From Klebsormidium nitens (Eukaryota > Plantae > Klebsormidiophyceae), in NCBI GenBank assembly GCA_000708835.1, contig DF237397.1, positions 10,262-74,261 on the forward strand: DNA of 64,000 nt, in the 5' to 3' direction. The position numbers and the translations under genes were made by a program. This document shows positions 18,701-44,006 of the stretch, one piece after another. Under the pieces are notes generated by a model. It was not told the DNA's origin. It worked only from the letters and a program-made list of their open reading frames with translations, and did not search any database. Numbering within the stretch: the stretch's first letter is position 1; each line of letters begins with the position of its first letter.

Positions 18701-21700
18701 TGGGGTCAAAGAAAGTAAGTTCGACCTAACCCGAAACTAGCACACAGTTACGTCATTTAGAAACCGTGAGTATGTAAAGCCTTGTCTTCTCTTAATGTTC
18801 CTCCGCTAGATTCGGTTTCACTGAGTACAGGAAGAAATCAAACTGGGGGCCTGAAATGGAGGCTGACTGTCCGGATGTCGAAGCTTTTATGGAGAACCGA
18901 ATGTCACAGCCTTCAAGTCTTGTTGAGCAATTTTTTTAATGTCCTACTAACATGAGGGTTGTACGCTGCCTCGTCTAGATATCAAGAGTGGTCTTGATGA
19001 TTGTACGAACGTGGCTTGCCTATTGAAGTCGATTTGGATTGTCGCTAGCCGGAAAAGAGTTTTAAACCGCACTTTTGAGATTCTTGAACCGGAATTGAGT
19101 CTCTCTCATACTGAGGCCTATTCTTGATCCTTAAATATCAGATCCAACTTTTATTTCGCGCTGAAATTTCCAATATGGGACCACATGCGCAGTCTACCTT
19201 CAGTGTAACATACAGCTCAGAATCGCAAATGCCTCGATCGCCCTATTCTAGAATTCATTGAAGGAGCGTGAATGCTTCGAGGAACAACAGGGGTCTATGC
19301 TGGAGCTGAGACCCCTACTTCATGTAGACGATGTCTACTTCAAAACCGAGACGCGGCAGAGAAAATGATAGAATCGACGACTTGAGTAAAGGGAATGAAA
19401 AACCGCGCAGTCCAAACTAAGACAGGACGTACTTTTTCAGGTGGCGATGTGTCAAATCGACTTTGCGGACCTAGAGCCCAACGAGTTGCGCGACTATTGG
19501 CTGGACCTGAAGAAGGATCTGGAAGGCGACGCAAACCCCAAAAACGCAAAGTTCCGTGGGAAGCTCCACCTAGAAGTTGAATACCGTCCGTTTGCCGGGG
19601 AAGATTTGGATCCGGTTGAGGTGGGCGGAGTGGTGGGCGGAACGGACGGAACGGAGATGATACAACCGGACGTGGAAATTCCGCAGGGGGGCGGGCTGCT
19701 TTCCATTACGATAGGGCAGGGGATCGATTTGATGCCGGTCGATCGGGGCACGTGTAATGCGTACGTGGAGTTCAAGTTTAGGAACGAGTTGCACATAACC
19801 AAGGTGGGAAGATCTTACTCGTTTCGCCTTCCATCCCTCGTTTCGTCTGACACTTGCGTACTTATTCTCCTTGAGGCCAGATCGACGAGAGCTCTAATAG
19901 AAAATCTCTGCTGCTTCGGCTTTCTCCGTGAGGGCGGAATGCTTTTCTGCCGTGTCATTTCACTAGTTACAACCTGTATTGCTGACGAGTGTCTAAGCTG
20001 AGAGACGCGATACGCTTTCGCCGCTCGAGGGCGTCTGCGCTCCTACTCTCTTTCCTTTTTTTGTGGTAAGTTACGCAGCTGAGGCCTGCGGCCTAGAAAT
20101 GGTGGTGTCATGCTCGTTTGTTCTAGAGCTGAATAGTGATTTGTTCTCGATTCACGTTCTTGGGTGCGACGTACCTTACCAGGCTGAGGTTTGCCATTCA
20201 AGCGCCTATCCGTTTTCCGGTCCTGGAAGCGGCGATGCTTCCTGAATAGCCGTCACAATCTGTCCGACTAGGGCCGTTTCAATTGTTCAAGAGGGAGATT
20301 CTCAAACGCCTTTCCCTACTAACGATTTATGCAGGGACACAGTTCCGAGAGGGTTAGTCTTCTCCAAACCCCATCAGTTGATGTGCAATAGCATAAGCAA
20401 AGCACCAAGGAAATGGTTTATTAAGCTAGCCGACGTTCTGCCGATGACCCACGCGACTAGTCGGCCTGTACAACTGGCAGGACGTGGAGCGTCTAATCTC
20501 GTTGAATGGGTGTAAGAACCTGCAAGGTTACTTCGTGTACGGCTTTTACCGACCGGCATGGTAGGATTCCGAATGTTCGAAAATGATAATTAATGAAGAA
20601 ATACGACCGATTTTGGCGACTTTTTTAACGAATGCGACCCTGAATCCGAATCTCCCCTGGAGGACCATCCGAGCACCTTTTCGCCCCTGAAAACCCGCTT
20701 CTGGAGTGACCGGTTGATACTTGTTACTTTCCGACCGTGCTCGACCAATTTTTTTCTGAATCCGAATGATCATTTTCCAAACCAAAAATCGGATTTCTAG
20801 CTTTCCGATAGGCAAATCAATATTTAACCATTCGGAATCATACCTTGCCGGAACAGTATTTGACCCGGTTGCGAACTCAGTTTGCAAGCAACCCACTGAT
20901 CAAACCAATGCCTCTGCTATGCAGGACGTGAAGAAAGACACGAACCCAGACTGGGGCGAGCACTTCCAGATTCTGTGCGACAGCCCGCCGCGGGACGAGT
21001 TTCTGTTCATCCGGGTGTGGCATCGCAACCGGGGGAAGGATAAGCTATTGCGGGCGATGACGAACATCAAGCATCTTGTGAAGGCCAACATTGAGGGCAA
21101 GGTAAGAAGGGCTGAGGCATCGCTACGTTGCGAGCAGCCTGCATAGTCTTTCTGCGGAAAGTCAGGGGTGTCCTTTTTCGAAATCTCTTTCTGGCTGCTG
21201 TAAGAGGGGGCGTTCCGCCACGTGGCTCTTGGGCGGACACACAGTCCTGGACCTGGGACTAAGTTTTGCCGTGGACTTGTTACTGCGTGCACTTTCGGGC
21301 GACCATCAGAGCGGAGCTTCGCCTTGAATTGTCGCCTTAGGGTACCGGGTCTACTGACGCCTTTTTTTGAATTGTGGCCTGTGAAGTCTTCTCTTGCGCA
21401 TGCGGGAATCTATGAGAGCTGAGGTCACTTCAGAAAGGTCAGGCGCAGCTTTGCGGCATTCTCAAGAGACCAACGTCACATTTTCTGCAACAGCTTTCCA
21501 GTTTCGATTAAACGCAACGTCTTTGGGGGCCACTGTGTATGCGCAAACGCTTGCTGGATATTTGCTCAGTTGCTCGACGCACTTGCAAGAATACTGGGCC
21601 CTCTTGGCAGAATCACTTGCCAAAAGTCAGGTCAGAATGGGAGCGCACGTGTTTGAGTTGGAAATATACCCCTGCAGATACATATACCTTCAAATTCCTC

Positions 21701-24532: not shown

Positions 24533-26258
24533 GATACATGCTACGTAGCATCGCCCTTCTTGCCAGGTACCTGGTAGTATTCTTCTTTGCGTTTAAGTTT
24601 CAAGCAGCTTGCATTCTCTTCTCATATTGCTGTGTACGCGGGGTCACCTTCATCCTGCATTCATTGGAAGGTCAATTGGAGCACGGTCAAGCAAATGCCA
24701 GCCTGCACAGTTCTATTTGCAGCAGCCAGCTCCGTCCAAGGATGCAACGAGCAGATAAATTGTCATATGCGTTCTTTTGGGTCTACTGAAAACTGTAACC
24801 TGATAAGAAACATCCGCCTGATGAAAAAGGGGCTGAAGAAGTGGCACAAGCAGCTTTGAGGTCGTTGTCTATTCACCAAGACTCAAGAGCTGGGTGATTG
24901 AAATTTTGATAACCGCTCATAGTTGCCGGCACGTTGGATATAGGCAGATAGTCAATCCGCTCTACAAACATACTAAGCGTAGAAAAGAGCCAGCATATCG
25001 AGTTTCTGCTCTCTGAGCTTTCTTTTCAATCACGACATCCTGCTGCAGCCGGCATGCCGTATTGCAATCTAAGAACAATCAAAAAGTTGCTTCAGCACAT
25101 CTGGAAGCTCTAATTTGGGCATAGACGACCGGGTTGAAGGTGAGCTATTAAATGCAACATTGCACCACCATATTGTTAGATTGCTTTTCTCTTTCTGCTC
25201 GCAAAAGCTTTTTGTCTTTTTGTTGTTTTCCTCCAGATTGAAGCTGATATGAGTCTGTACCCTGGAAAGAACCCAACTGTAAAACTTGAGCTTGCCCTTG
25301 GAACACTTTTTACCCAGGGCTTCGTGCTTCCGGACGACCCTTACCCCGCTCCTTGCTTGTATTTATTTCTCAAGGGTTTATCATGAGGCGGATCTCTGTG
25401 ATCAAGTTCAGCATGCTTTGTCTGAGGCCGCTCGAAGAACTTTATACAACAGAAAGGACTCGAAAGGGTTGGGATGCATTGCATAACGAGAGTATGAGCA
25501 AGGACGTCAACCTGAGTGATGGAATTTTCAGAGACTGGTAGTAGAGCCATATCTGGACAAAGCATACGCGTCTCACAACCAAAAGAATTGTATGCTTGTG
25601 GATCACTCCTCAGGCTGGATCGTCAATTGCATTCGAGACTGCCGGTTACAGAAACCTTGGTAGAGTCGATGAGCAGGGGGCTTATAGAAAAGATCGTGGC
25701 ATAGCTTGTGAATGCGCGTGCAGATGAAAAAGATGGATGGAAAGTAAGGAGGGTGGGTCAATCGTGGTGGGGTGAAGTGACACGAAGAGGGCAGCTCTGC
25801 GTAAGAGGAAACAGAGTGCCAAGGCTGAAAAACATGGCTGCTCCATTGTAATGTGGTCCCCTCAATCCACTGGCCTGTTGAGATAACTGGAAGCAATAAA
25901 CCAGCGGTCCAGATCTGCTTGTGAATCACGACCTGACACAATATATAATCTGGAATCATAATGATTGTGTACTAGCTCCCTCTTGTGATTCAACCAATGC
26001 AGCACTGCTTTCAGATTCAGATGGCAATTCGCTTCGCCTGAGTGTATACTTGCTTATGAAGGTTCACAAGCCAGCAGAAATTCATCGTCACGGCGTCCTA
26101 CCATACCCTCTTCTCCTCGTTCTGAGCTTCCCTTGATTATTAGCTTTTTTCAACCCAGAGAGAACAGCTCTACCCATGGAATACCTACGATTTTTCTGGC
26201 TGAAACCCCTTTCTACATCTTTCCAGGCCCTCATAAGCTCCACATAGCTCCATAAGCT

Positions 26259-29200
26259 ATGGCCGGGGTCAACCTGAATATAGTCACAGCGGAGCGTCCC
26301 CCTTTTGTGTTCAAAAGCAGTCGCACGGACGGAGGCGGAATCTGGTTTGGTTTCCTGGTCGAATTGCTACCGTTGCTGTTTCAATATGCCAACCTGAATG
26401 TGACGCTCAATTACTACGAGTCCCCGACAAACGAGGGTGGAAGCCTACTGCCAAATGGAACGTGGTCTGGTGAGCTTGTTGGCCTTTGCTCTTCAAGTGA
26501 TTCAGGGGCTTTTGGGTTCCCAAGTTAGTGGCGTTTATTAACAGGAAATAGAAATGGACAGATCTGGAGGGTTAGGAACCTCGGTCAGGAGCTGCGCAGC
26601 AATTGCGTTGGGGTTTCTTGAAGTTACTGGGAACGTTGTTTCAGACTGGTTCGGGTTTGGGTTGAGCTGAAGGTGGTAGTTATGAAGGAGCTGCTTTCCT
26701 GAAAGCAGGTTAAGGTGGCGGTCAAGCACAGTCAGAAGTGTTAACTTGAGAGTTATTAGGGTGTGGGTTGGGGATACTTAGGGAGGGCTGAAAAGCGGTT
26801 AAAAAAGGTCGGATACGGCGGGTTTCAAAGTATCCACCTTAGACCTACAGGCATCAGCTTAAATGTTTGTGGAAGGACGGCACCATCAAATTCTGTATGA
26901 ATAAAGTCACACAAACTGGAATCCGCTTCCAGCCGGTTTTAGGGTTTTACGGATTTCGCATTCGCAGGCACGTCCAAAACGCCCCGTCAGCCTAAACAGA
27001 CCCAAACGTCCAACACATCATTTCTGCTTAAAGGCGGTGTGCCATGCCAAAGACTACTCCGTGTGGCTTGATTATGTTGACACTACTAAAGAAATTTTCT
27101 GAAAAATCTTTGCATTGCAGGAGTGACCGGGGAACTGGTTTACGGGCGGGCCGACATAGCGACTTTCCCTTTGGTCCAAGCCCCCTGGCGGTGTGCCAGT
27201 CCACAGACTATTTCGTGTGGCCTGAAATTTTTGACACCAAGAAACGAATCAATTATCCTGCCTTGCAGGAGTGACCGGGGAACTGGTTTACGGGCGGGCC
27301 GACATTGCGGCTTTCCCCTTGTTCCTAACACCAGGGCGTACCGCAGTGATCGATCTCACATACTCGTACTATGAGTCGGGTCTCGGAGTGCTCGTCCAAA
27401 AAGAGGTTAGTCCCTTAAAGAGGACACTTCAAATATGGTTATCTCTCGTTTCGGGTCTCGGGGTGCTCGTGCCGAAGGAGGTTAGTCGCTCAAACTGAGG
27501 GTTAACCGCTTTAAGAGTGGCGCATCGCAGGCCGGTTATCTCACGTATTCTTTCTACGAGTCAAGTCTCGGAATACTCGTTCGAAAAGAGGTTAGTCGCC
27601 CAGACCTAGGGTTAGTCGCTTGATGAGGGCGCGTCAAAGGTCGTACTCCTACTACAAGTCGGGTCTCGGAGTACTCACTCAAGAAGAGGTTAGGCGCTCA
27701 AATCAAGGGTTGATGGTTTAACGAAGGCGCATTACAGTGCGGTTACTCTCACATCCTTTCACTACGAGTTGGGTCTTGGGGTGCTCGTGCAAAAAGAGGT
27801 TAGTTTCTCAAGGAAAACACGTTACATACGACCATCTCACGTCCGCCCACTAAGAGTCAGGTCTTTGGAGGCTCGTCCAAAAAGAGGTTAGTCGCTCAAA
27901 CAGAGGTTTAGTGGCTTCAAGAGGGCTGGTCACAGGGTCCGTCGAAAAAGTGGGTACCGTCGAGGTGAACGGTCACGAGTCCTAGCAGCGTTTCTGCTCG
28001 GGGAGGAATCTCATCTATCTCCGTCTTCTGGGGACATAAAGCAGAAATGCTTGCTGTGCACTCGCCTTTCTTCAGCTTCTGATTTCCTGGTCTCAAGATA
28101 GTCAGGGCCTCTTTGGAAGCCTACCTTTTCGAGGCGCTGCATCAGGGATTGCGCCAACGTTCAGTTTCAGATTGTCAAACGTCGCAATTCTTATTCTTTT
28201 CCCTTAGCGTCCACGTTGTAACTTGCGAACGCCTTTGGCACGTGAGTTCCTTTTAAAGCCCTGCTGCGCTGGACACATCGGAGTGACTCCTGCAATTTGA
28301 GACCTGTGAACCTCAATCCTCTGATGCGCTGAGAATTGAAACCTCCAATCCCAAACCATAAACCCTTAGCCGTTTTCTGGACCATGTGCCGACCGTTTAA
28401 CTCGTCATTCGCAAGCAACCCTGGTACGGACCTTTTCCTTATGCTCTCCGTTTCAAAACCTTGTATAAGTTTGGGCCTTTAAGAAACGAGAGGCCGGCGA
28501 AACCTCGAGTTCTAAAGTTCAGGATTTAAACCTTTGCCCGAACAGATTGCAGGCACCCCCGGTACGGACCTCTTTCTAAAACCCTTCACTCCCGCGCTCT
28601 GGTTGGCTCTCATTGCGACGGTCCTCGGAATGGCCATCGTCTATCACCTACTCTCGTGGGCTTCGCCTTTGGGCGAGTTTGAAGTCGTTAAAGTGCGCAA
28701 TGTGTCTACGAACTCCCCCGTCGAAGAGTTCTCCATTAACTCAGGTGAGCCACACGGTCTTAGCAATAAAGTGCAGTTCTTGTCCCCCAAGTTCGACAGA
28801 ATTTTTTCGTGTAGTCTAAACGTTTACTGCTGTCCGTAGGGGCCAAAAGTCAAGGAGCGCACTGCAGTCGATGGACCGTTTGACGGTCGAAACTTTCGAG
28901 CGATGTTTAGGTTTTGCATGGTAGAGAACGTTCCCATTCTAGGGGCGTCAGAATGAGTGTCGCCCTTGAGGGGGGGTGAAGGTTTGAGGGTCAATATGAG
29001 TTTTCCTTGTGGCTAGACTCTGATCACGTCTCTCTTGAAGTTTGTCTGACAGCTGTAGTGGTTTGGTGAGCTTTTGATGATGGTCTGACACACGAGACAA
29101 ATCCCATGTCAATCGTTTGATGCCGAAACGAAATTTTCAATGCGAGCTTCGTCGTACTATGACGAGTATGTCGTCCACTTCATTTTTATCGAAGCTAGTC

Positions 29201-32200
29201 CTTCCTGAACTTGCTCGCTTTTTTGGCGCAGAGAACGAGTCGTTTCTGCTGGACGCGCTTCTGGTGAGCCGCACAATAGTTGCTCCTTCCCTCTTTCGAG
29301 CTACGCTCCCTCCGAAAAATCAGAACTTGGAATCAATCACAATTGAAACGGGTGATTGTCTTGGGACTACATTCTAGCTTGCGGAAACGACTTTTCGTGG
29401 CTCTTCAAGCTGGTGTATCCTAGTTTCGTTTTGTGAGTTTGCATTCTCCTGTGCATGAATCAGATGCTCATCACTAGCAAGACTCTGCTACATTCAGGGA
29501 CAATCAAAATCAGGTATTGAGAATTGGTTCCCCGGTACTATGGGTGCGTGCTCGAGTTTCTGCTTCAGGACATTCAGCAGCTCTCAGTATTCCTCTCTGG
29601 TTGTGTGACTTCACTTGTCGTCTAGGCTGACGTAGGAGCCCTGTTTCCTGACGCAGGCGGCCATGACCATCTGCGCGACTCCACGTGGCAAGAGCTGGTC
29701 CATCCGCATCCCCAGCATAGCGTATTACTTCTTCACCATGATCATCGTGGCTTCGTATACGGTATGCCCACTCGCCCGCATATTCTTTCCAACTTCAGAT
29801 TGTTAAGGAGCAAAGACTACTATAGGAAGTGACGACTTGGTAGTAGACCGAGTTGGGTCGGAGGTACTGTGATGCTTGTAAGGTGCTCGTACCAAGCTGA
29901 TTCTAGCTCTTGATATATATCTCTGAAGAAATTTCCGAGTCAAGCAACCAATCACTCTCGGGTGCCGCTGAATATGCATGCATTGCGTTCCCTCAAGTGT
30001 TCTTATCTCTCACACCTACATCCGCACCCGGCGTTTGATGGTACGTTGCATCTCATTTCTAACGGCTAGGAGATGTCGAGTAGCTAGAGGTTGCACATCG
30101 TTTTCTCATCCCTTCAAATTTTAACCGTCAATTTATCGCCTTTCCTGACAGACAAACCTGCCTCTTTTCAATGTACTAGTCTCTGAAATAGAGCATCAGG
30201 ATGGAAAGCCAGGCCCATTTTCACACTACTATAACTTCGTCTCCGGTCTGCCTTTTGAACCCCTCTTTTAACCCGTATCTTTCACGAGCGAACTTAGCCA
30301 CTTACTGTATTGTCCAACGTCCCTTGATCTTTTCGAACAAAGTCGGAAGGCAGCTAGACCCACCTTCTGTTTCTGGTTAGCCTTAACCCCGTCCTTAGCC
30401 CGTCTCTTCACAGGCCGACTGTTCCGATTTGCCTTGACCCCGTTCTTAACCCGTCCCTTCGCCGGCGGGCTTCACGTCATACTCAAGGGTGCAATCGTCA
30501 AGTACCCTGTTAACTGGTTGAAGAGCTAAGACCCACTGGCACCTTTGGTTTGCCTTAACTTCGTTCTTAACCGGTCTCTCGCGCAGGCCAATTTCGCGTC
30601 CTATCTAACCGTCCAATCCTTCAAGTACCCGGTTAACAGTATCGAAGAGCTGGCCGCGCGCAATAAGCTGAATTACGTCATCAGCGGCGGGGGGGCGACC
30701 GAAAGCTACTTTCAAAACAGCGTCGATCCCACCATTCGTGCACTGCGGTCACGGTTACGGGTGAGAATCATTAATTGCAGGGGTTAAGCTTTGGTTAGGC
30801 GAAATATACGCGGGATCGACTTCTTACAGCGAGTATGCTCCAAATGGTATACAAGGGTGAAAGTCATTTGTGACAGGGACTACGTTTTGATTAATGTTTT
30901 ACGATTGAGACTTCAGTCTCAGAAATCTTAAAGGCTCTGTAAATGCATCCGCTGAGACGCACCAGTGTTGCTAGGTGCCCTACTCCGCAGCTTCCCTTTT
31001 TGCGCTCTCCCACACAGCGTCGATCTAGCAATTCTCACGCAATTCGGATACATTGTTTGCGGCCGAGACCGAATGTGGAGTCATTCAGGTGGCATGCCTC
31101 CGTCCTGTGAAGACAGTCTCTAAACTGCAAGTTTGTTCACGTTGTAAGGGAGATTCGTCAGGGAAATCAGGGTCAGAGAGGGCGTTTCGTGAGGAAGTGT
31201 ATGAGCACGCTGCCAAACGAGAGTGCTTTTTGCGCAATCATACCTCAATATGACACTCGCCGTGTTGCGCTTTCCCTGGGCATAGCGGGCTGCTTTTCCA
31301 TCGCATCGTGGGAATCAAGTCTGCTGGTACTGCACACGTGTTATCTGCTGCGCAGAATGAAGAGAAGTTGCTCTTTAACGTCATTGATGAACTGTGCGCC
31401 TTCTGGTTGTGCAATCTGTGCTTTGCCTCCACAACAGCAGATTTTCCAGATTTTCCTGTGTTGCCGTCCGGTTGAATTCGCACCAACGAGCATGATAACA
31501 GAGACAATGTTGCAGGAGAGGCGCGTCACTTGACTCGAAATCTCGAAAGACGCACTCCCCCTTGGCTCAATTACCCCAATTGCGTAAGTCTTTCTCAACT
31601 GCAGACGGTCATTGGGAACATCGACGGCGTTCAGGCAGTGCGCGACGGAAAGTACACCGCTTATCTCGCAGAGACGCCGACCCTTCAATACTTCTCGGGA
31701 CAGGATCCGTGCGATTTGCAGGTTAGTGACCGGTTTAACAAATTCCGCGGGGACCCATCTACTCAGGAAGGGTTTTGGCTGCTAACCAGGTCTGGTCGTT
31801 GGGCATTAGGCTAACTTCCAGCCGATAATCGGCGGTGATGCACCGCCATGTGACGTATGCGCTTAGGGCAGCTTCCGGACGCTAGGGGGCGCTGCCGGAC
31901 CGTACTAAATATTGAGGGCGTTTGGGAAAACGGTTCTTCTCGCGCGCTTTCTCGTTTACGGCGCTGGAATCAAAACACAGGCAAGTGTTCGGAAGAATGG
32001 TTCGTACACGCAAGCTCCACACCCTCATCCAATAGAAGCTTAGATCCGCAAACGGAATGTATACCACTTCGGACGCTCCCCAGGTGGTGGGCGCGCCATT
32101 CGGACCGTCCTTTTACACTCTGGTGTCCGAAAGAACGGTCCGTTCAAGCGAGCTCCTAAAAATACTCTAGTCCTCAAGTCCCGAAACCAGAAACCTTTGA

Positions 32201-34650
32201 CCCGAAAGTCCGAACCTTGAAACCTCAAACATCACTTTCGGACGCTATTTAGAAGGTTGGTACGCCGTTCGGCCCGTCCGTCCCGTCCGTTGACACCCCA
32301 AGGTTCCGAAAGAACCACCTTCACATAACTATTTGCATCAGATTCCGTTTATTCTTAGGATTTGAGGATCAAGTCACTATCTCTCAATGAATCCTTCGCT
32401 AAGAGATCGAAAACCGTAAGAGCGGATTCTTGTCTCGGACTTTTGCAGGTGGTCGGTGCGCCCTTCGACTCGTTCCTTTCAGATTTGTGACATTCGAAAG
32501 AACGATCCGTACAAGTCAACTCTCAACCAATCCATTACCCTAAGATCTGAAGGCCCTAGAAGCCAAAACCCAATTTCGGACGCTTCCTAGGTGGTCGGCA
32601 CGCCTTTCGGACCGTCCCTGTCACTTTGGGCGTCCAAAAGAGTGGTCTGGACACGCAATGTCTTAACCCCAAACCTTAACCCTAGATTGTAAAGACTCTA
32701 GAATCCACTTTTGGACGGTTCAGGTGGTCGGCGTGCCGTTCGGACCGTCCGTTTACACCTTGGACGGTCCGCATATGCAAGCTGTCTACCCTAAATCGTC
32801 AAAATGCCCTTACAATTTAGTTTGGAAATACCAAAACCCTTCAAACATTTGAACCCCAAAACTTATAGCCCCGCTTTCGGACGCTTCCCAGGTGGTCGGC
32901 TCGCCCTTTGGACCGTCCGTGTACACCTTGGGCTTCCGCAAGAATGGTCCGTACACGCGCGCGATCAACCGGGCGATGCTGCAGCTGAAGCAGAATGGGC
33001 TGTTGGACGAGCTTAGAAAGAAGTGGGTCGACGACCAGAACGTGTGCTCAGCGGAAAACTCGGTAGGCTTCCCTCCCCTTGTATTTGTCTAACGATCTTC
33101 GTATTTCTCCTTGAGCTCGTGATTACAGTCATAAGAAAGACTTTGGTCGACGACCGAAACGCGTGCACAGCGGAAAACCCGGTAAGTTTGCTCCCAATCT
33201 AAACTCATTGTGGTCATTCACAGCACTTCAGACTTTCTTTCCCGACTCTTTCGATGGCCCCGAACGTGTGCATAATGAAAAGCTCGGCAGGTGTCCCTCC
33301 CTGGTCTTGGCTTGATTTGTCTCTTTGTGATCGTCACTTTCGTGAAACTCGTCTGATCCCATTTTTCAGAAGCAGTGGCTCGATGACCACAGACCTGTTT
33401 GCTGCGAAATCTCGATGGGCTTCCCGCCACTAGTTTCGACGTCTCGTGGCCCCTCGCTGTCGTCGTTTTTGTCCAACTCTCTGTCTGACCGTGTCACAAG
33501 AATAAGATGCACTTCTAATCAAAAGCGTGTACTGCGGATATACTGGTAACTTTCCTCTCATATGCATGTCATTGTGTTCTCTTCGTGCTTGGCCTTCACA
33601 TTCAAAGAACGAAGTGCTTCTGATTCTTTTCCTCGGAATGAGTTGGTTGACGGCCAAGATGTGTGCAGCTAAGGACTCGTTGGGCTATTCTATCTCCTTG
33701 TTTGCAATTCCGAACTCTGATGTTTCCTTCCGTCTGCGGGCCTCCGATCTTTGATTGTGGGTGATACGCCGGAACTCCCTGCTCAAAACCCGGGTTCGAC
33801 TTCTGAAGCCCGTCGCTTACAGCGCGTGACGTCATGGAACAAAGGCATATGCTTCTTTCTGGACTGTTCAAAACTTCTATTCGAACAGATGACTAATACA
33901 CAACGAGAACATTCCTGATGCACCAAGGGACGTTTCGCAATTTCGCAATCGGGTCAATTCAGCATCACGGCGCATTGAACGTTTGGCAATTGTCAACGGA
34001 AGCGGAACGGACACGGAGACGGACACAATCGAAGAGGCACCGTGAATCCTTATATACGCAAGTCGCTAGCTTAACAGAACTCTCTGCTGACGTCACTTCT
34101 TGAGCGATGAGGTTCCTGGTTTTGGAGACACATCGTCCCCTTGGAGACTAACTCACTTACGCCCTGTTTAAAACAGAATTTTGGAACGCTTGTATCGTGC
34201 ATATTGAATCCCCATTCCCTTTTGCAGTTAACGAACACCTCGTTGCGCGTCAAAGACTTCAGCGGGCTATGGTACCTCCTCGTCGGCGTGCTCGCTTTTG
34301 GCTTCGTATGGGCGATCGGCGAACGGATTCTGGTGAAGACTCTTGCCGCCAACCCCGCTCTCCGAGAAAGGTTCATCCGTACGACCCACAACGTAAGTAG
34401 GGCGGGAAAGCGGCTCGACCTCTTTTCCCGGATGTCGTCGAGGCAATCGGGGGGATCCCCCGAGGACACCGCGGTTACCGAAAACCAGGCCTTCGAACCC
34501 GGGAAGGAGGGGGCCCGGCTTGAGAAAAGCGGGTCCGAGAGGAACCGGGCGTTTGACGTGTTTGACGTGCCGGAAATTGACGAGGAGTCGGGGAACGGAG
34601 TTGATAAGCAGGAGTTTGACCCGAACAAGGAAGGGTTGGTGTTGCTTTAG
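26259..34650 (+). CDS. GLR: Ionotropic glutamate receptor-like channel, copy 1 (S1-M1-pore-M3-S2-M4-CTD, no amino-terminal domain), about 522 aa, 9 coding exons
   Basis: Phase-consistent exons 26259-26469 (NIVTAERPPFV...GFLVELL...NGTWSG), 27269-27405 (GELVYGRADIAAFPLFLTPGR..VIDLTYSY), 28546-28744 (FLKPFTPALW + M1), 29232-29263, 29657-29761 (PRGKSWSIR...IIVASYT), 30587-30760 (ANFASYLTV...GGATESYF), 31605-31721 (AYLAETPTLQY...DPCDLQ), 32892-33062 (VVGSPF...INRAMLQLKQNGLLDELRKKW...C), 34228-34650 (LRVKDFSGLWYLL, M4). Total 1569 nt. Confidence 0.92.
27035..27268 (+). repeat. Tandem duplicate (about 148-bp unit) of the acceptor and 5' half of GLR copy 1 exon 2
   Basis: ttgcag|GAGTGACCGGGGAACTGGTTTACGGGCGGGCCGACAT starts at both 27121 and 27269. 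The preceding intronic motif GGCGGTGTGCCA...GACTA..CGTGTGGC is also duplicated. Confidence 0.9.
27440..27900 (+). repeat. Five decayed copies of the 3' end and donor of GLR copy 1 exon 2
   Basis: GAGTCGGGTCTCGGAGTGCTCGTCCAAAAAGAG|GTTAGT (true donor after 27405) is echoed with copies ending near 27480, 27590, 27688, 27798 and 27886, spaced about 90-110 bp apart. Confidence 0.9.
31850..32890 (+). repeat. About 6 decayed copies of the acceptor and 5' part of GLR copy 1 exon 8
   Basis: TTTCGGACGCTTCCCAG|GTGGTCGGCTCGCCCTTTGGACCGTCC...CCGCAAGAATGGTCCGTACACG (true acceptor before 32892) is echoed near 31875, 32070, 32238, 32437, 32576 and 32711. Confidence 0.88.
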
Positions 34651-37600
34651 AGACTCTAGTGTCTGGAATCCCGTTTCAGCGCTGCATTTGATACTTTGAC
34701 AGGTTAGTAAGTTTATAAATCTTTGCACCTTGCTGGAAAGCCAGCCCGCGAAATCTCAGCAGGACAGTTCGCGACTCCGCCAATCTTGGCCCCGAAACGA
34801 CGTGACGAAAGCTTCTAAAACAACTCTTAAGTAACTAGTAGTTGTTGGTGAAGGTTTAGCAAGAAATAATTAGCATACATATCTTGCCGCGGCTGTGGTC
34901 CTAACCTTCCAGATTTAAGGTAGAACGTGGACTCCATCATTAGAGCAGGCAAGGAACTGTCGCAATCAGCTCAAAATTAGCGTAAAGTTTGGGGAAAGCG
35001 CTTCCAAGCACGATCCCAGTAGATACAAGATTTTTGAACCCATTAATTACTGATTCAAAAACAAGCCATTGATGTAACAATATGGATGATGCAAAAGATC
35101 TTACCAGAGACTTGCGACGGACTACGGTGATCGACTTCATTTGTAAAAAAGACTCTAATTACGAGCTTAAGAATACTTATGAAAGCTACGCAAGTCAATG
35201 GATATACAACTGAGTTGTATATCCATTCAGAATTAGTCGTCTTTAGGACACCCTCTGGTCTACATAAGTCTAGCTTGCAGATAACATTTCAATTCGAAGT
35301 TTAGAACAATCTGTACGGTACATGCATGCAGAGCAGGTCGCGCTTTCAATGCGATACTAACCTGCAGTCGATCGACGCCCTGACCAGATAATTAGCCAAG
35401 ATTTCTAAGACGTACATCTTTGAAGCGTCCATCATATCAAAATCTGGCAAGATGTTGGACTCAACCACTGTCACTATCAGGCTTGGAACGTACGGATGCT
35501 CACAGTTTTCTGCAGACCGTCCGTTCGAATCTTTCATTGCAAAGCCGCGCATGGCCCATGCCGGTCGGACGTTTCATTGAGCAGCTCAACAAAGAATGTG
35601 GACAGTGGCGGCTGGCCTGTAATTAAAGAAGTGGGCGTGCACGGCTGCCGGTAGGTAAGATCGCCAATCATTGACGGTACTTAATAAACGGCCGGTGACG
35701 TCGCGCTGCCGCTCCAATAAGAGGGTTCGACGTATGGGCAACCCCACAAATTCTGGAGATTTTATCGGATCTACACGTCAGGCCCAGCCGTCCACCGGGC
35801 TAGATTTGTAAGAGCTGTTTGCTGCTTATAAAGTCTCCAAAATAGGAGCCGGGGCAAGCCCCCGGGTGCGCGTACCAGCCAGGCTGATGCATTACCGGTG
35901 CCACGTGGTGGCACAATTGATATCTTCGTTACTACCGGTATGATCTTTGAGTTGCCCGGGTACTTTATCAACCAAAGGAGATAACTCAGAAAAAATACCT
36001 ACTCGGTGACAAGTCAACTTGTGCCGCCCCCAAGCGCACCCTAACCCACTGAACAGTCGGCTAACCCCACACATCTTCCGGGCGGCTATCTAGGTCGATC
36101 ACAGCATCACACTACAAAGTGCACAGCAGATGTTGTTAGGGGCCTCGGCTAGGAAATCAACCTGCAATGATGATCAGAATCGCAGGATGGTGTCCACTCC
36201 CTCTGAATCTGAGACTCTGAGTCTCAGTCCACTCCTCCAGAGTTCTCATGATAAAGCCAATACTGACAGATCTGACATGTGCGGCTTCCTGCCAAAGCTT
36301 GGGTCCTCCACGTCTAGCAGCATTGTGAATTTTGTGATAGGAGTCAACAACCAGGCATCAGCTTATCGGGAGCTGCTGCTAGTTTTCAGACACAAGTGGA
36401 CGCAAGCGACGCACCAAGAGTGCAGAAGGGCTGAGACGAAGGGGTCGGAGCTAATGATAGCACAGGTCAGGAGCATTAATATAGATTGCTAATCACAGCG
36501 TGTGAAAACCTAGTTTTGATCAGTGTGAGCTTTGTGCGGATTTTGCTCAGTGGTCAGCTAGCTGCTTGCTTCTCTGCAGCTGAAGAAAGCAGGACATGCG
36601 CATCGAAGCCTGAAGATCGAGGAAGAGAGGGCAAGCATCAAAAGAAGGGAGACTGCAGATGTTAGCCGCGGAAGCTGTGAGCAGCGCAGAGAAACCCTGC
36701 GATTCTTCCGTTTACAGCTGCAGTTTGTGTAGGTCAACAAACGTACCTGGTTCTAGACTCTATTAGCGGTTGTCAGAGAGTTCATAAGCTATTCTGGAAG
36801 ATTTGTGAGCTTTGCTTAGGTTCACAAACCCCACCACCCCTCTGTCGTCCTCAAAAGCCGGGCACATTTTCTTCTGCTCAACCAACTTTTTTCCAAGGCG
36901 TTCTTTCAATGTCATTTGTATCAACGACACCTCGAGAACATTGGTCAAGCTGCTACAGGTCAAGAATGTGAAAAGAGATGCCAAGTGAAGTCTAGTTCCT
37001 AGTGAATAATTCAACAGGTAAGTTGTGACGATTCAACGGTGCGTTTTGCAATTCTTGTGCAAGAATATGATGCTTGTTTAAGGATTGCTAAAGTGTGCAT
37101 CTAATCTTTGCAAGTGCCGTTTAGTTGACCAAACCAGAATCATAGTCATAATCAGTCTGGCTTCGGTTATGGCTCACGCAGTGGACTTGAAGATGTGTGG
37201 GCCCTGCATGCTTTTATCGACCTCATTCAAGAGCCTCTGGTCAAAAGGATGATTGGACAGCTTCCTGCAACACGATCTTTAAACCGTTCTTGAGCGGCCT
37301 TCCGCAAATGAGAATCTGGGATCAATGGCAGACATCAGAGCTCAACGGGTCTTAGCAACGTGTCAATCACAGCAATTATTTGCTCAAAGCAAGAATAAGT
37401 CAGATAGTATCCTGTATAAGTTAGATAGTATCCTCTACAATACAGGGAAGCAAGTTGGCGGCGCCACTAGGCTGACACTCCAACCCTGATCTACGATTGG
37501 CTTGCAATTGTAATTTGTCAGTGCCAATCTGACTGAGGCCCAATTGGCTCACAAGTTCTTCTGGCCACCTGCTGTATTGCAATCAAACCAAATGACCCAA

Positions 37601-37896
37601 GTTAGCAGCCCCAAACAACACCAATAATGCGTAGCCCAAATCCAGCCAACATTTCAGCTGAGGCGTCTAAGCCACTCAATCAGGAGTTCTAAATTATTTC
37701 TTGCAAGGTTTGCTGCTGAAATATCAAAACCTTTTGGCAGCCCCAAATTCTGTCATCCTTGTTGCTAACTTAGCCAACCTAACCCGAATTGACAATTCAA
37801 AACCTTTGCTGAAGTTCGAATCAAGGCACCCTAAACATCATCTGAACATCCGCAGGCACAAACTAACCCATTGTGGCAGCCCCAAGTACCACGCTT

Positions 37897-40800
37897 ATGG
37901 CTAACCTGGCCAGCTTAACCCAGATAAACGTGGTAGTAGCGGAGCGGCCCCCTTATGCATATCCCAACGCTTCGGACCCTTATGGCTGGTCGGGGATGCT
38001 GGTCTCTCTGATTCCGGTGCTGTTTCAAGCGGCGGGAATCAATGCATCGCTCAACTTTTACGAGTCGCCAGACAACGGGGGAGGGACACTAAAGAATGGC
38101 ACGTGGAACGGTGAGTGGTCCTCAGATTGTAAGATTTTCGGACAATTGTGGTTCGAGATTTCTGAGTATGCGGGCCAATGCGGGAAACGTCGGAGAAAGT
38201 GTTGAGTCATCCCTTGACACCTTGAAGACTTATGTTGAGGTTGGGAACAGCTTTCAGAGCTCGGTGAGGAAATTGGTTAAGATGCCCACTTCTCTAGGAA
38301 GCAACAACCTGCAGCCACTGGATTTCACAACGGTCCAAAGGAGAACCAGCTAGAATCCTAGCCCAGCATCTGAAACTTCTGGTTAAGCCCGTAATCTTGT
38401 GCCATCTTTTAATGAAACCAAGGTCTGTGCAGTGCTTACTTAGACACACGTACGCCCCTGCATTGCGATAGCTCATACTGCGAAACCGATCGAATGCCGT
38501 AATGCATGGCTGAGCACAGGTCATCTGGGCGACGTTGATTGAAGCCACGTGTCACCATGTTGCGGCGCCAGGTGTCACCGGAGAGCTCATTGCCAAGCGC
38601 GCAGACATTGCCGCTTTCCCTCTCGTACAATCACCGGGCCGTCCCGACTACATCGACATGTCGTACTCGTACAACGAAGCGGGGCTAGGGATTCTGGTGA
38701 AGAAACAGGTAAGGGGTCATTCTTGATCTGCTGGTGCATTTATTGCCTCAACCCGTCAATGGCAGAACACATAGGCTGTCCGTTTGGAACCGCCCTTTGC
38801 GGAGCCCTTTGGAGTGGATTCCAGACAAGCCCCGAAGTTTTGCTGACCTCTTCTCCGCCGATTAGTCGAGTTGTTTCGTAATGGATGGCGTGATGGAATT
38901 TGCGCAGGTCGTCACATCACCTGGCGGAGTAATTCTCGTCCTCGTAAAGTTCTCAATTCGCTATATTGCACGTTTATGTTGCTCGCCTCCATTCTGCTTC
39001 GATTCCTCGCTGCAATATTGCAAACGGCAAAGCAGAATACGGAGTTAGAGTTCAACGGGTGGAGCCGCTTTGAGTTTCGAGACGTCAACGTTAAGAACTT
39101 GGATCAAAGCACCTCAGGTGACATGACCTGACTTATCTGCTCACCACGAGCGCTGCATTTCACGTTCCGGGCAATGACTCTTCCCTTAAGCCCCTGTTAA
39201 GCCGCTCGGTAAAGGACCCGAAACCTTCCACGTGCAGAAAAGGAGACAGCCTTTTCAGGTGACCAAAGTAGATTGGCCAACTTAAGTGACCAACTTTGCA
39301 TCGAGTGACCAACTTGAGTGATTCTACGTAGACCAACTTCGACTCATTGAAGTTACTTTCCAACGTTCTCAATGTCATTTGCAGATCTCTAGCAGCAGCG
39401 GCACTACGCTTTATCTGAAGCCCTTCACCTCCGATCTGTGGGCCGTTCTTATATGCACAGTCTTGGGGATGGGCTTCGCTCTGTATCTCCTATCCCTGGT
39501 CTCGCCGCTCGGGGGATACGCTATCAAGCGCATGCGTAACGTGACGGCTGGTACGGAGGAGCAGCGTTACGTTATCGAAGACAGTAAGACCGCCCACCCT
39601 TCGCTCGTGATTCTTCGTTCTGTTATCCGGCCGTTCGATCGTTTTTCAGATCGAGCTCCCGCACCTTGGTATTCTGTTGACGTTTGCTTGCTCACGTCGG
39701 GCTCGAACAAGAGTGATGGCAATCTTCTTCGCTTTTGAGCTCTTAGCTTGTGGATGCCTCTGGAACCTTCCAGTTGGAAGTCCTCTCCGCACGATTTGGG
39801 ATTGGTAATCTCGCTTCCTTTTTGTAAACCCTCTCCGATACTCTTCTCTTGATTCAGAACGCTGGTCTTTGTGTGCAGTGTTGGACTCTTTCCTCATTGA
39901 CGTCCTCATGGTAAGTCTTTCAGAAACCTAAAGCAGAGGAGCCTAGATTAAGCGCCCAAAGGCCCGAACTTAAAAGATCGGCTGGTAGCTGATGAAGTAA
40001 TCTATTGCTCTTAGTTCATGAGGCCTTCCACATTATCGGCATGCGGATCTAACAGTCCGGCAAAGGAAGTTTGCTTCATCCAGAAACTGTGCCCAACTCT
40101 TTCCACTTTGTGCAAGTCCTGCCGCCTTTTCTGAGCTGGCACTGCTTTGCACCTTCCCTCCCAAGGAGAGACTCTATCTACTTTAGATTACGTCACGGTG
40201 GTGGAAAGCCTGTGTCGCCTGCCCTACACCATACGCTCATAGTTAATCCCTGACAATGCGCGTCAAATCCGGAATCAGTCACCACTTATCATTGGTATCA
40301 GAGCGTTGAGAGCTGTGGAAATTGTAACTTGTAACGGCGGGCTCTTTCAGAATGTACTCGTGGTGGCCCTTGACTATGCGTCGGAAGGAAGTAGACATAA
40401 TTACCTCATTCGTTGCAAGTAAACAGTCGAGTGCTTCGCTCACCGTGGCTCCTCTCTTGTGCGTGCAGGCCGCTGTGAACAACGCCTGGGAGCCACGTGG
40501 CAAGTCCTGGTCCATTCGATTGCCGTTCGTTGCCTACATCTTCTTCATGCTCATCATCATCTCTAGTTACACCGTAAGTCTTACTGATTCCCTGCGGAAA
40601 CTCTTCGGAGTCGTGTTGTTCTTGACAATGAAACTCAGCTATCTTTTCTTCCTTGTTCATTCAACTCGCAATCCAGTCATTAGAGTAGACGAAGCCTCTC
40701 GCCTTGAGAACAGCCGATCCTACGTCCAGAGATGACATATCGCCTGCCCCTACCCTCGTTGGCGGCAGCGGTCATGCTACCTGAAGGGGTCTGAAACCGC

Positions 40801-43800
40801 CGCTTAACCGGTGCCGAACCCTCTTTGCTCCAGGCCGACTCCGCCTCGGAATGTGACGGTTAAAACTCACGTTTTGGAGATTGAACTCAGCACCGCTTCC
40901 ATTCTTGATTCGAAACCGGCGCTTGACCCCCTTCCTTGCCCCCTTTTCTCACAGGCCAACTTCGCTTCCTACCTGACCGTTAACCAGTTCAGCACCGTGG
41001 TTAGCAGCCTCCAGGACCTCAAGAAGGGCGGCCTCAATTTCACGATCAACGCGGGGGGGGCGACGTACACCTACTTCACTCAGAGCCTGGCCCCCACGAT
41101 CCTGACGCTCCAACCCAAGCTCTCCGTAAGTTTCAAGTCTGAGTTTCATTTTGAGTCTTGATTGGACTTCGGCTTTTGAATGAGTTTGCATCTGGGGTTG
41201 TCGTTCGGGTTTGTCGTTCGGGTTTGGGTTTACCCCTCTGAGGCCGTCGATGTCTGAGATCCTGAAGCTCTTATCCAATCCTCCGTTAGTTTGGAGTTGT
41301 CTGAAGTTAGCTGATACTTGTGACGTCACTCAATGCGTCGGCGTGCTCAAGTAACGTACAAAGATTTACTTCTCCCCAGAAATCTGCCACTGGCCATGTT
41401 TGGGTTTCTCAAGGATGCCGTCAACGCTTTAGAAGTTGCAGAATCTTGATGCAGTCCGACGAGATGCTGCTCCTCCTTACAAAGTGCCTGATAATCCTGG
41501 CCTTTGCTTTTTTATTCCTGATTTCATGCCCGATCGGGTGCGATAGGATCTCGAGTTGCGGCCGGTCAATGGAAGCTTCGTTATCACAGCTATCAAAGCG
41601 GAAGACTTTGCTGACTATACTTGCTGAAGGGTTAGGGTTGCTCTTGCCAACCCAGTTTTAACTGGCAAGTTATCAACCCAAAATCAAGGTGTTCACCAGC
41701 CAACTTAACCTGTGTTGCTGGGAAACGCGTTGGGGTTCAAGTTGCTCTTGTCTCAAGCTGTTAGAAATTGTGGTTCTAACCCGCTGTGTTTCTTCCGTCG
41801 ATACGACCGCTTTTAAAGCATTCCCCGCCGCTTGTAAGTCCTCACAGGGAAGATCCATTCGAGCCCCAAACACACTCCTGTCGCTTCAAATGTTTTGATC
41901 AAGCTGATATCTGACGACTCCACGTTTTCCTGGGCACTGGCCAGATCAACCACGTGCAGAATCACTCAGGAATTTGTCGCCGTCAACCCGTCACAAACTT
42001 GTAGCTTGACGTCAATTCGCTGACCCGCTTCTTTTCATCTCTTCTCTCAAAAATCAACAACCCCATTCGGACAGGACTGCCCTTGCGGCGTCAGCGCTAA
42101 CGTCACCTATCGCGTCTTGCCTCGGAATTTCGAAGCCATTTTCCCTGGGCCTGGCTTCCGTTGGTTTCGGTGCCGCTTCCGCTCACATTGCGGAAACGCC
42201 GATTCTGCTTCCGAGCTGCGACGTCAGCGCTGACGTCATCTTTCCTCTTTCACGCAGACCGTCGACGCCACCTTTCCGGGCCTGGATTCCGTCCGTTCCG
42301 GTGCCGCTTCCGCTTACATCGGCGAGTCCCCGACGCTGCGTTACTTCGCGGGAATGGAGCCTTGCGACCTGGCCGTTGTGGGGCAGCCTTTTGGCCCGTC
42401 GGTCTATACCCTCGGCCTGCAGGTACATACCGTTCCGTTCCGCAGTTTCGTTCCGCTCTGATCCTAGAGTACTTCGCCAGAGGGGATCCGTGCGACCTGG
42501 CCGTCGCAGTTCTAGGGGCCCTCGTTTCGCGTCTTGTTCCGCTTCAGATTCGTACGAGCTTGATTTGAAAAGGTCCTGATGCCAGAGGCTGAAAATTGCT
42601 ACGGCGGCACAGAGAATGATGCGTTTCGACAAAAGGCTTGGCCGACCCATCAAAACTTGTTCAGAGCAATTGGCGAAACTCAAGGCGTTCATTCTCTGGA
42701 CTGGTATGTCTGACGGCCCAGACTCTGCACCTTGTCGTGGCTCCAGGTTGTAATTGCCAATTTGCTAGCTTTGACTGCACCTCTTGTGGGAAGAACAAGT
42801 GGTTTGAGCTGGTGAACGAGGAGGGGCTATGACCGAATCGTGCGTGGTCAGAAAGTCAGCAGCATTTGACTCCCCATAGATAGATATTCGCAGCATTTCG
42901 CTTTCGGCTTCTTGGACATGTGAGAGGGCAGATTGGCGATTTAGTACGCTAGCCGTTCGAGGCGTCCCTTTCTTTGCGATAAATCTGTCCTCAAGCGGTC
43001 ATCACGTCATGCCCACGTCATCCTTTCTGCAGTTCAACTCTCCTTACACGCCACGAATCAATGAGGCCATGCTGACACTCAAGGGGAACGGCTATTTGGA
43101 CCGACTCCAAAGGATATGGATCCAGGACGCCAACGTATGTGGTGGCAACTCTGCAAGCGTAAGTTCCGCAGCTCTTGGGCTCCGGTACGAACCTAAAGCT
43201 CTGAGTCGGGGCACAGATTCATCGTCTTGACTGACTGCATGAAATCTTCGTATTAAGCCCACCGCTCCGTAGCTGCTGTCACTTCGATGGTGTTCCGATG
43301 TACTCAGCAGAGTCCCTCCTCAGGTCGTGTTTATTGTGTTAGCGTAGGCACTTACACTCCTGATAAGCGGACGAACTTCAGATTCTGACTGCATCAGTTC
43401 TCGATACCCGTTGCACAATTCATCCGTTGTAATCTTCGAGTCCTTCGAAGGCTGTTCAACGAAACTTCGCACGTCTGCCCTTCGCTCTCTACTTCAACCA
43501 ACCCCAGAATTTGGCGTCTTAACCCGGATTCTTAGAAACTGTTTCGCTCGGGTTCTGCGATCCTCACCCACCGTTCGACTCTTCGCCATTCTCCGCAGGA
43601 CACGATCGGGGCGCTGAGCATCAGCGACTTCTCCGGCCTGTGGTACCTCTTGCTGGTCGCCATCGCGTTCGGTTTTGTCTGGGCGGGGCTCGAGCGGTAC
43701 GTACTTTTCCTCCTCACCCGGTACCCTTCACTTAGGGACCGGTTGGCCGCGTGGAAGGCGGCCGCGGCGCGCCACGGAAAGAACTTCGAAATGACCCGGG

Positions 43801-44006
43801 TGTTCTCGCACGTGTTTTCCCGGTCGGTATCCATACTCGTACGGAGTAAGTCCGAGATCGCGGCCGCGACGCCGACGGGGCGCGCGCGCGCGCCTGCGAG
43901 CGCCGAGGAGGAGAGGTCGACGGAAAGGGCGGCGCGGCTTGCGGTGGAGAATTACGATCGGGAAAAGGCGGAGCGCGCCGCACAGAAAGTAGGGCGGTTG
44001 TGGTAA
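37897..44006 (+). CDS. GLR: Ionotropic glutamate receptor-like channel, copy 2 (tandem paralog, no amino-terminal domain), about 518 aa, 9 coding exons
   Basis: Phase-consistent exons 37897-38110, 38572-38708 (GELIAKRADIAAFPLVQSPGR), 39385-39583 (YLKPFTSDLW + M1), 39879-39910, 40469-40573 (AAVNNAWEPRGKSWSIR...IIISSYT), 40955-41125 (ANFASYLTV...GGATYTYF), 42258-42422 (AYIGESPTLRY...EPCDLAVVGQPF), 43033-43158, 43599-44006 (LSISDFSGLWYLL). Exon sizes 137/199/32/105 equal those of copy 1. Total 1557 nt. Confidence 0.92.

Follow-up and report, generated by a model that had tools for sequence, protein, structure and literature searches.

The stretch analysed here (the window, 64,000 nucleotides of scaffold DF237397.1, positions 10,262 to 74,261, from the streptophyte alga Klebsormidium nitens NIES-2285, assembly GCA_000708835.1) carries two co-oriented genes on the + strand, copy 1 (26259-35382) and copy 2 (36272-44006), which encode short ionotropic glutamate receptor (iGluR) subunits. 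Coordinates are given as window positions (window position = L001 position + 27896). Exon translations of both genes match Lig_chan-Glu_bd, SBP_bac_3 and Lig_chan in Pfam, and both copies contain the ligand-binding segment S1, membrane segment M1, the pore loop, M3 (SYTANFASYLTV), the second ligand-binding segment S2 and M4, in a subunit layout that ends with a tail. Copy 2 is the 518-residue protein GAQ88650.1 (UniProt A0A1Y1ICK6, hereafter P0001), already named "glutamate receptor". The pair is a real feature; it is no new kind of channel and belongs to a well-known family. The claim of an earlier note on this DNA, that both genes lack the amino-terminal domain (ATD) and the signal peptide and keep M4, is borne out by the Pfam matches, the alignment with GluA1, the stops preceding both start codons and the failure of tblastn to find an ATD. 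Tandem expressed paralogues from a green-algal clade of short iGluRs are the best explanation for the locus, and one that is held here with moderate confidence.

The 5' end of copy 2 can be read from transcripts. Contigs from four runs (X1, X5, X6 and X7, with two organism labels, four study codes and no record of library type) were placed on positions 34000-39999 and, since they are spliced, derive from RNA. The exons of copy 2 are as follows.

36272..37017, + strand: non-coding exon 1, 5' leader (RNA contigs, joints, leader analysis)
37856..38110, + strand: exon 2, with 41 nt of leader, TAA 37864-66, ATG 37897 and the start of S1 (RNA joint in four runs; exact match to GAQ88650.1)
38572..38708, + strand: end of S1 with the ligand-binding Arg (RNA joints, P0001 match, Pfam)
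39385..39583, + strand: M1 and the M1-M2 loop (RNA joints, P0001 match)
39879..39910, + strand: mini-exon of 32 nt (RNA joint 39583/39879; a loose contig end resumes at 40470)
40469-40573, 40955-41125, 42258-42422, 43033-43158 and 43599-44006, + strand: remaining coding exons with pore, M3, S2, M4, tail and stop (exact reconstruction of P0001)

The first exon (~36272-37017) is non-coding and is followed by an 838-nt GT..AG intron in the four runs, all of which contain the joint 37017/37856 (acceptor 37855/37856) as well as the joints 38110/38572, 38708/39385 and 39583/39879. The donor after 37017, formerly proposed from the letters alone, is thus present in the spliced contigs of X1, X5, X6 and X7, while the acceptor, formerly set before 37880, has to be moved 24 nt upstream, which leaves the frame unchanged. 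The nine coding exons reproduce the 518-residue GenBank protein exactly from GT-AG introns.

The start codon of copy 2 (ATG 37897-99) is preceded, ten codons upstream and inside the coding exon, by an in-frame TAA (37864-66). The TAG at 36993 is also in frame with this open reading frame (ORF), and the spliced leader has no ATG 3' of it, as had been stated before and still holds with the corrected acceptor. Because both stops are in frame, the sampled isoforms contain no in-frame N-terminal extension of copy 2. Only a few residues separate the translation start from the first strand of the ligand-binding domain (LBD), and there is no room for an in-frame signal peptide. The mRNA leader (36264-37017 plus 37856-37896) is ~790 nt long and contains seven upstream ATGs with short, unconserved ORFs, the longest of which (71 codons) is not kept in the orthologous contig L005. 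In X1 only, an alternative donor, read as 36676, is joined to the same acceptor, and an unspliced contig spans 37103-37882; both junction variants enter at 37856, 5' of the in-frame TAA. A long leader rich in upstream ATGs, together with an alternative donor, may point to control of translation or to another start site further downstream.

The public model of copy 1 differs from this picture: it has 378 residues, starts at 28630 inside M1 (window 28630-34650; L001:734-6754), contains no S1 and matches Lig_chan only, two S1 exons (26259-26469 and 27269-27405) being unannotated in GenBank. The copy 1 sequence is colinear with P0001 residues 9-458, including these two exons (tblastn), and homology-guided modelling yields an intact frame of ~519 residues, with the exon count and phases of copy 2. 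The 137-nt exon 2 has the same length and phase as the RNA-verified copy 2 exon 38572-38708. The joined translation was used for hydropathy and for one tree row only. The revised features are listed below.

26225..26258, + strand: candidate CAG acceptor and short 5' leader with stops in three frames (sequence, three-taxon conservation)
26259..26469, + strand: exon 1, with the start codon and the beginning of S1 (MAGVNLNIVTAERPPF...) (Pfam Lig_chan-Glu_bd, tblastn, 76% nucleotide identity to orthologues confined to the exon)
27269..27405, + strand: exon 2, 137 nt, end of S1 with the ligand-binding Arg (FPLFLTPGR) (Pfam E 2.8e-7, tblastn, conserved in L002)
27111..27930, + strand: intron echo copies of the exon-2 edges (repeat search)
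28546..28727, + strand: exon 3, pre-M1 and M1, 3' boundary modelled (tblastn, homology-guided model)
29167..29197, + strand: putative mini-exon, start of the pore helix, the least certain, with weak splice sites (similarity to copy 2 exon 39879-39910)
29657..29761, + strand: end of the pore loop and start of M3 (PRGKSWSIRIP...SYT) (Pfam Lig_chan, tblastn)
30587..30753, + strand: end of M3 (ANFASYLTV) and start of S2 (phmmer matches to kainate and AMPA receptors in PDB; tblastn)
31589..31721, + strand: exon 7, middle of S2, 5' boundary uncertain (alternative 31550), weak splice site (tblastn, model)
32892..33062, + strand: end of S2 with the second conserved Cys (tblastn; 3' end from a loose RNA contig end matching only 33033-33061)
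34228..35382, + strand: last exon, M4, C-terminal tail, stop 34648-50 and 3' untranslated region (RNA contigs 34227-35258/35382, four of four runs)

RNA contigs fix the last intron of copy 1 (33062/34228) and its 3' end. One contig of 829 nt continues 5' of 34227 over a length close to that of exons 3-8 taken together, an observation that weakly indicates that the copy 1 mRNA reaches past the annotated start. Three of the four runs (X1, X6 and X7) also contain, at 34000-34256, contigs of lower depth (9-14, compared with 76-93) in which the last acceptor is read through without splicing, a sign of a retained last intron or of pre-mRNA.

The repeat search also found, within the copy 1 introns, an echo of the exon-2 acceptor and the first ~70 nt of this exon at 27111-27190 (88%), four or more degenerate copies of the end of exon 2 with its GTTAGT donor at 27451-27930, and an echo of the exon-3 start at 28411-28439 (83%). 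Judging by their sequence, these echoes are potential decoy splice sites, and may explain both the public model without S1 and the breaks of RNA contigs near the exon-2 junction.

For the 5' end of copy 1 the evidence is comparative. The ATG (26259-61) is preceded directly by GCT and an in-frame TAA (26253-55), exactly as had been claimed; in the stretch from the candidate CAG acceptor (26225-26) to the ATG, the two remaining frames are closed by TAA 26234-36 and TAG 26245-47. The sequence CATAAGCTATGGC, which includes the in-frame TAA, is invariant in three Klebsormidium taxa, so that the arrangement TAA-GCT-ATG is conserved; CATAAGCT, before the ATG, is likewise invariant in three taxa. Sequence further upstream diverges: conservation across species starts 9 nt 5' of the ATG, and no conserved block was found within 0.8-3 kb 5' of the start in the orthologous contigs. 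Contigs from other Klebsormidium strains (L002-L004 and L006) match only 26250-26474 and exon 2, with 76-79% nucleotide identity. As the exon-1 peptide is 82% identical to P0002, with 76% identity for the exon nucleotides, exon 1 appears to be under purifying selection between species. A protein search with the exon-1 ORF returned only genomic exon ORFs of other Klebsormidium strains (P0002 and P0079). A pyrimidine-rich CAG lies 12-32 nt 5' of the ATG in each of the three taxa, and the candidate acceptor at 26226 is a CAG, like nine of nine RNA-verified acceptors of copy 2; the sole acceptor able to bypass the stop is AAG 26254-56. From this pattern, ATG 26259 is very probably the true start of copy 1. 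The existence of upstream coding exons had earlier been left for transcripts to decide; in copy 2 they show a non-coding leader and fix the N-terminus, and in copy 1 the answer comes from comparative sequence only.

The core of both proteins is that of an animal-type receptor. P0001 aligns with GluA1 from S1 through M4 (phmmer, E 2.4e-39), and one S2 exon of copy 1 is enough by itself to match kainate and AMPA receptors in PDB (phmmer). In an AlphaFold model of P0001 residues 1-430 (pLDDT 81.6, 16-row alignment), residues 1-4 are disordered, the first strand comprises residues 8-14, and M1, M3 and M4 span 133-156, 208-237 and 391-424, respectively. The best Foldseek matches of this model are AMPA receptor structures of the LBD and transmembrane domain (E ~5e-26, TM 0.55-0.6), the high root-mean-square deviation being due to a different domain orientation. 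Exon matches, the Pfam domains of P0001, the model and Foldseek agree on a bipartite S1/S2 LBD (PF10613, PF00497), and both copies contain the channel domain M1-pore loop-M3 with a SYTANLAAF-type gate (PF00060). Among the residues for amino acid binding, the ligand Arg of S1 (R95) is nearly invariant, and the motifs GGAT and GES align with GST and the E of LLES in GluA1 (the Thr and Glu of S2), the equivalent of GluA2 T480 being Val or Phe in the two copies. M4 is seen as a hydropathy peak (389-407), as the model helix 391-424 and in the GluA1 alignment. The cysteines Cys322 and Cys377 do not vary among the family members (11 of 11) and correspond in the alignment to those that lie in PCD and ECG of GluA1, where the pair forms the LBD disulfide.

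An ATD (PF01094, ANF_receptor) is absent: S1 starts at residue ~8, the RNA leader of copy 2 is non-coding, and the ATD parts (first ~400 residues) of five ATD-bearing queries gave only noise in the 64 kb (tblastn). Nor was a cleavable signal peptide found before S1, where in-frame stops precede the ATGs and the 12-residue hydropathy maximum (1.65-1.9, against 2.6-3.0 in relatives with a signal peptide) lies in strand 1 or helix 1 of the LBD. The RPPF motif lies at residues 13 and 17 in the window proteins and at 26-30 in members with a signal peptide, so that the window proteins begin about where the mature relatives would.

The segment LASLTQINVVVA of copy 2 was considered as a weak signal peptide and rejected, since the model assigns residues 8-14 to the first LBD strand at high confidence.

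Just after M1 (P0001 ~164-168), a motif RN[VL][ST] is kept in four K. nitens paralogues (P0001, copy 1, P0005 and P0030), and could be either a basophilic kinase site (RxxS/T) in a cytosolic loop or a glycosylation sequon used only under an inverted topology.

By sequence, the best solved relatives of the pair are animal AMPA receptors. With AMPA and kainate receptors (GluA1-4, GluK2/5; PDB 9nr7, 7qhb, 3kg2) the algal proteins share the S1-M1-M2-M3-S2-M4 core, aligned end to end, a SYTANxxxxLTV gate, the Arg/Thr/Glu ligand triad and the LBD cysteine pair. They differ in lacking the ~400-residue ATD and the cleavable signal peptide, in a short, divergent pore loop and a shorter M1-M2 linker, and identity is ~24-26%. 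Prokaryotic GluR0 lacks M4, has the TXVGYG filter of K+ channels and carries a signal peptide. With this receptor (Synechocystis slr1257) the pair shares the absence of an ATD and the S1-channel-S2 order, whereas the algal proteins have M4, a SYTAN gate and pore loops (AAVNNAWEP and AAMTICATP) without GYG, and are not of GluR0 type.

Relatives of iGluRs that lack the ATD and have M4 are already known as the ionotropic receptors (IRs) of insects and other protostomes (PMC2924276). The tuning IRs of insects resemble the algal proteins in both respects (PMC2924276), but IRs are protostome-specific, with a non-homologous N-terminal region of ~200 residues, an LBD without glutamate-binding residues and obligate ATD-bearing co-receptors. 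The algal proteins start at S1, keep the ligand triad and belong to a streptophyte alga, and are thus not IRs. The amphioxus subunits GluE1 and GluE7 also have no predicted signal peptide (PMC6307864); they are of the animal epsilon class and, unlike them, the algal proteins have no ATD. Land-plant GLRs (AtGLR3.x; P0074, P0077 and P0078) belong to the same superfamily with the same core domains, Klebsormidium being a streptophyte; however, they have an ATD and a signal peptide, gates of SYTASL type and a long branch outside the clade of short algal receptors. The earlier note had seen in the pair an intermediate architecture between GluR0 and full-length receptors. This reading is unsupported, because the relatives of their green-algal clade include members with a signal peptide and ATD-less receptors with M4 were known as insect IRs; the proteins are eukaryote-type (SYTAN gate, LBD cysteine pair, M4, no K+ filter) and AMPA-like.

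A search of 1.8 billion representatives with a profile built from the two first exons gave 68 hits, among them the K. nitens paralogues GAQ85569.1 and GAQ82471.1 and proteins of Coccomyxa viridis, Volvox africanus, Gonium pectorale and Monoraphidium minutum. Almost every long hit (≥400 residues) has its S1 start within residues 1-22 and none has it close to residue 400; the one exception to the former, P0030, is a model truncated inside S1. A word search added a second Volvox species, V. reticuliferus (P0075), although word searches with P0001 (whole and 1-420) yielded only P0001, one Volvox relative and a few ATD-bearing receptors, missed even the K. nitens paralogues and are no evidence on family size. 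The short green-algal GLRs (GAQ85569.1, GAQ82471.1, Coccomyxa CAK0787222.1, Volvox GLI61922.1 and Gonium KXZ45007.1) share the architecture, the clade and the start before S1, and are orthologues or paralogues with 27-46% identity to the window proteins; Monoraphidium KAI8472309.1 differs in its signal-peptide-like N-terminus. Chlamydomonas GLR1, listed as uncharacterised (PMC8318260), probably belongs with them.

In a tree of 17 sequences, the green-algal short receptors form a clade (100/99 support) in which the four K. nitens genes are monophyletic and copy 1 is sister to GAQ82471.1, not to copy 2. Land-plant GLRs form a separate clade (100/100, branch length 1.94), outside which the window genes fall. 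The tree is small and midpoint-rooted, and shows separateness, not direction. According to these sequence comparisons, an ATD-less architecture that starts at S1 is not unique to the window and characterises a green-algal clade (Klebsormidium, Coccomyxa, Volvox, Gonium, Monoraphidium) apart from land-plant GLRs. No published description of the state of this clade, without ATD or signal peptide, was found in the literature searched, and a prior description may exist.

Signal peptides do occur among the relatives: P0056, its tandem neighbour, P0054, P0025, P0036 and P0052 have one. P0056 and its neighbour lie on a metagenomic contig (L007:10001-13177) as tandem intronless genes of 477 and 496 residues, ATD-less, with M4 and each with a clear signal peptide; taking into account that this contig also carries a fungal-type Zn2Cys6 gene, together with a fragmented MutS, the short architecture also exists outside green algae. 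In P0052 (L008:900-1010) the called start, MTIEQPPF, is an artefact, the upstream frame reading KLLLLLTVSSWCDSQV, a signal-peptide core ended by a stop; from the sequence, this signal peptide is probably split by an intron. This artefact means that gene-caller N-termini in the family are untrustworthy without a check of the DNA. Since some relatives have a signal peptide, its absence from the Klebsormidium genes is probably due to loss. Three K. nitens short-GLR paralogues have in common a CAG acceptor 30-42 nt 5' of the start codon (26226, 37855 and L010:5958), RNA-verified only in copy 2, which resembles a conserved leader intron, perhaps the relic of a lost signal-peptide exon.

It can be considered, as an alternative, that the true proteins are longer, with an unsampled first exon or start that supplies a signal peptide, at least in copy 1, and with the forms described here as minor or untranslated isoforms. 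The lack of RNA at the copy 1 5' end leaves space for such an exon, for which AAG 26254-56 could be an acceptor just past the stop; the intron-split signal peptide of P0052 was missed by a gene caller, and the sampled leader of copy 2 is long and full of upstream ATGs. Nevertheless, the two junction variants of copy 2 both enter 5' of the in-frame TAA, three taxa share an invariant TAA-GCT-ATG with no conserved block within 0.8-3 kb upstream in the orthologous contigs, and the RNA-verified acceptors of the locus are all CAG. Moreover, the layout of a stop followed by an ATG recurs in P0005 (CAG acceptor 42 nt upstream, TGA at -2 codons), in Coccomyxa, where a 1429-nt transcript contig has TGA two codons before the ATG, and in Volvox (stop at -3 codons). 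Longer proteins are therefore unlikely.

In the explanation preferred here, short tandem paralogues of the green-algal clade, the ancestor would have possessed a signal peptide, part of it contributed by an upstream exon. This exon would have become non-coding in Klebsormidium, as suggested by the leader intron of three paralogues and by the introns of relatives at the signal-peptide/S1 boundary, and the start codon would have shifted into the S1 exon, copy 1 presumably sharing the start of copy 2. The normal receptor topology would be kept, with M1 serving as an uncleaved signal anchor (N-out, type III) that carries the ~130-residue S1 segment across the membrane of the endoplasmic reticulum, a feasible export if S1 cannot fold stably until S2 is made. 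Given the intact Arg/Thr/Glu triad and SYTAN gate, the assembled tetramer is predicted to be an amino-acid-gated cation channel.

Three properties of the sequences favour the canonical topology: the cysteine pair, the charge around M1 and the density of sequons. Lys and Arg number 0-2 in the 15 residues before M1 and 3-4 in the 15 after it, in 11 of 11 members, whether or not they have a signal peptide. In S1+S2 the density of NxS/T sequons is 2.6 times that of the cytosolic loops and tails (p 0.004; p 0.009 for algal members without a signal peptide alone), although these statistics, like those of charge, count related sequences and are weak. The S1 sequons of copy 2 are N24, N49 and N66. N-out insertion by M1 is judged more likely than the unusual topology, organellar location or co-assembly that had been put forward in the earlier note.

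Several points weigh against this explanation, beyond the weakness of these counts. The 5' end of copy 1 has no RNA, the presence of exons 1-2 in its mRNA being deduced from conservation only, and the GenBank model has no S1. The call on the signal peptide depends on hydropathy and on a model that places residues 8-14 in the first LBD strand, and the seven upstream ATGs in the copy 2 leader mean that the main ORF may not be translated efficiently. An N-terminal tail of ~130 residues is long for translocation driven by a signal anchor, and amphioxus GluE1 and GluE7, which have no predicted signal peptide, reached the surface of HEK cells only with a grafted one (PMC6307864).

A further alternative is that the short subunits are not autonomous, and either need GLR partners with a signal peptide or an ATD, or a chaperone, or are drifting towards loss of function. 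ATD-less insect IRs do depend on ATD-bearing co-receptors, tuning IRs needing IR8a or IR25a (PMC2924276; bioRxiv 10.64898/2026.09.30.755715), Klebsormidium has several short paralogues, and the pore loops differ between the copies (VNNAWE and MTICAT). However, co-assembly follows membrane insertion and would not solve the translocation of S1, and the selection on exon 1 between species (82% protein against 76% nucleotide identity), like the transcription and intact frames of both genes, speaks against drift. This alternative is improbable to much the same degree as the longer proteins.

Slightly less probable still is a non-canonical location or orientation, with the LBD in the cytosol or stroma and the pore oriented as in K+ channels, or with an organellar or endomembrane channel sensing internal amino acids. 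This would agree with the lack of a signal peptide, with the arrival of Arabidopsis GLR3.4 and GLR3.5 in plastids or mitochondria (PMC11085791, PMC8318260), with the intracellular retention of the amphioxus receptors that have no signal peptide (PMC6307864), and with the sequon-like RN[VL][ST] that the Klebsormidium paralogues keep between M1 and M2, on the luminal side if the protein were inverted. Against it, the invariant cysteine pair matches the animal LBD disulfide, which needs an oxidising compartment, the charges flanking M1 speak for N-out in all members, just as they do in relatives that carry a signal peptide, S1+S2 are enriched in sequons, no room exists for a transit peptide before S1, and RNVT also fits a basophilic kinase site. 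The most extreme form of this idea, in which the whole green-algal clade dropped the signal peptide because its LBD faces the cytosol or an organelle lumen, its members being internal amino-acid sensors with a K+-channel-like pore orientation, is very improbable.

The family and its green-algal branch were already catalogued, and copy 2 was deposited and named. What is added is a transcript-based N-terminus for an algal glutamate receptor with neither ATD nor signal peptide (copy 2), and a corrected gene model of copy 1 in place of the public one without S1. The layout is common to a clade of the green lineage distinct from land-plant GLRs, a separation that rests on the 17-sequence tree only, and the fact that a streptophyte alga keeps animal-like short receptors bears on the origin of the plant GLR family. 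A compact (~420-residue core), naturally ATD-free eukaryotic iGluR would be useful for structural and biophysical work, and raises a testable question of membrane-protein biogenesis, namely whether M1 alone can export a half-domain of ~130 residues.

Exon 1 was searched in bacterial and archaeal contigs only, where the absence of a match is uninformative. As regards the surroundings of the pair, roughly 4-5 kb upstream of copy 1, an interval in which tblastn detected no ATD-like sequence, lies a neighbour on the + strand (~17667-21100) whose ORFs read like several C2 domains, e.g., GKDLKKTDVFGTSDPFVELWLDG, and whose sequence suggests a synaptotagmin or multi-C2-type gene.

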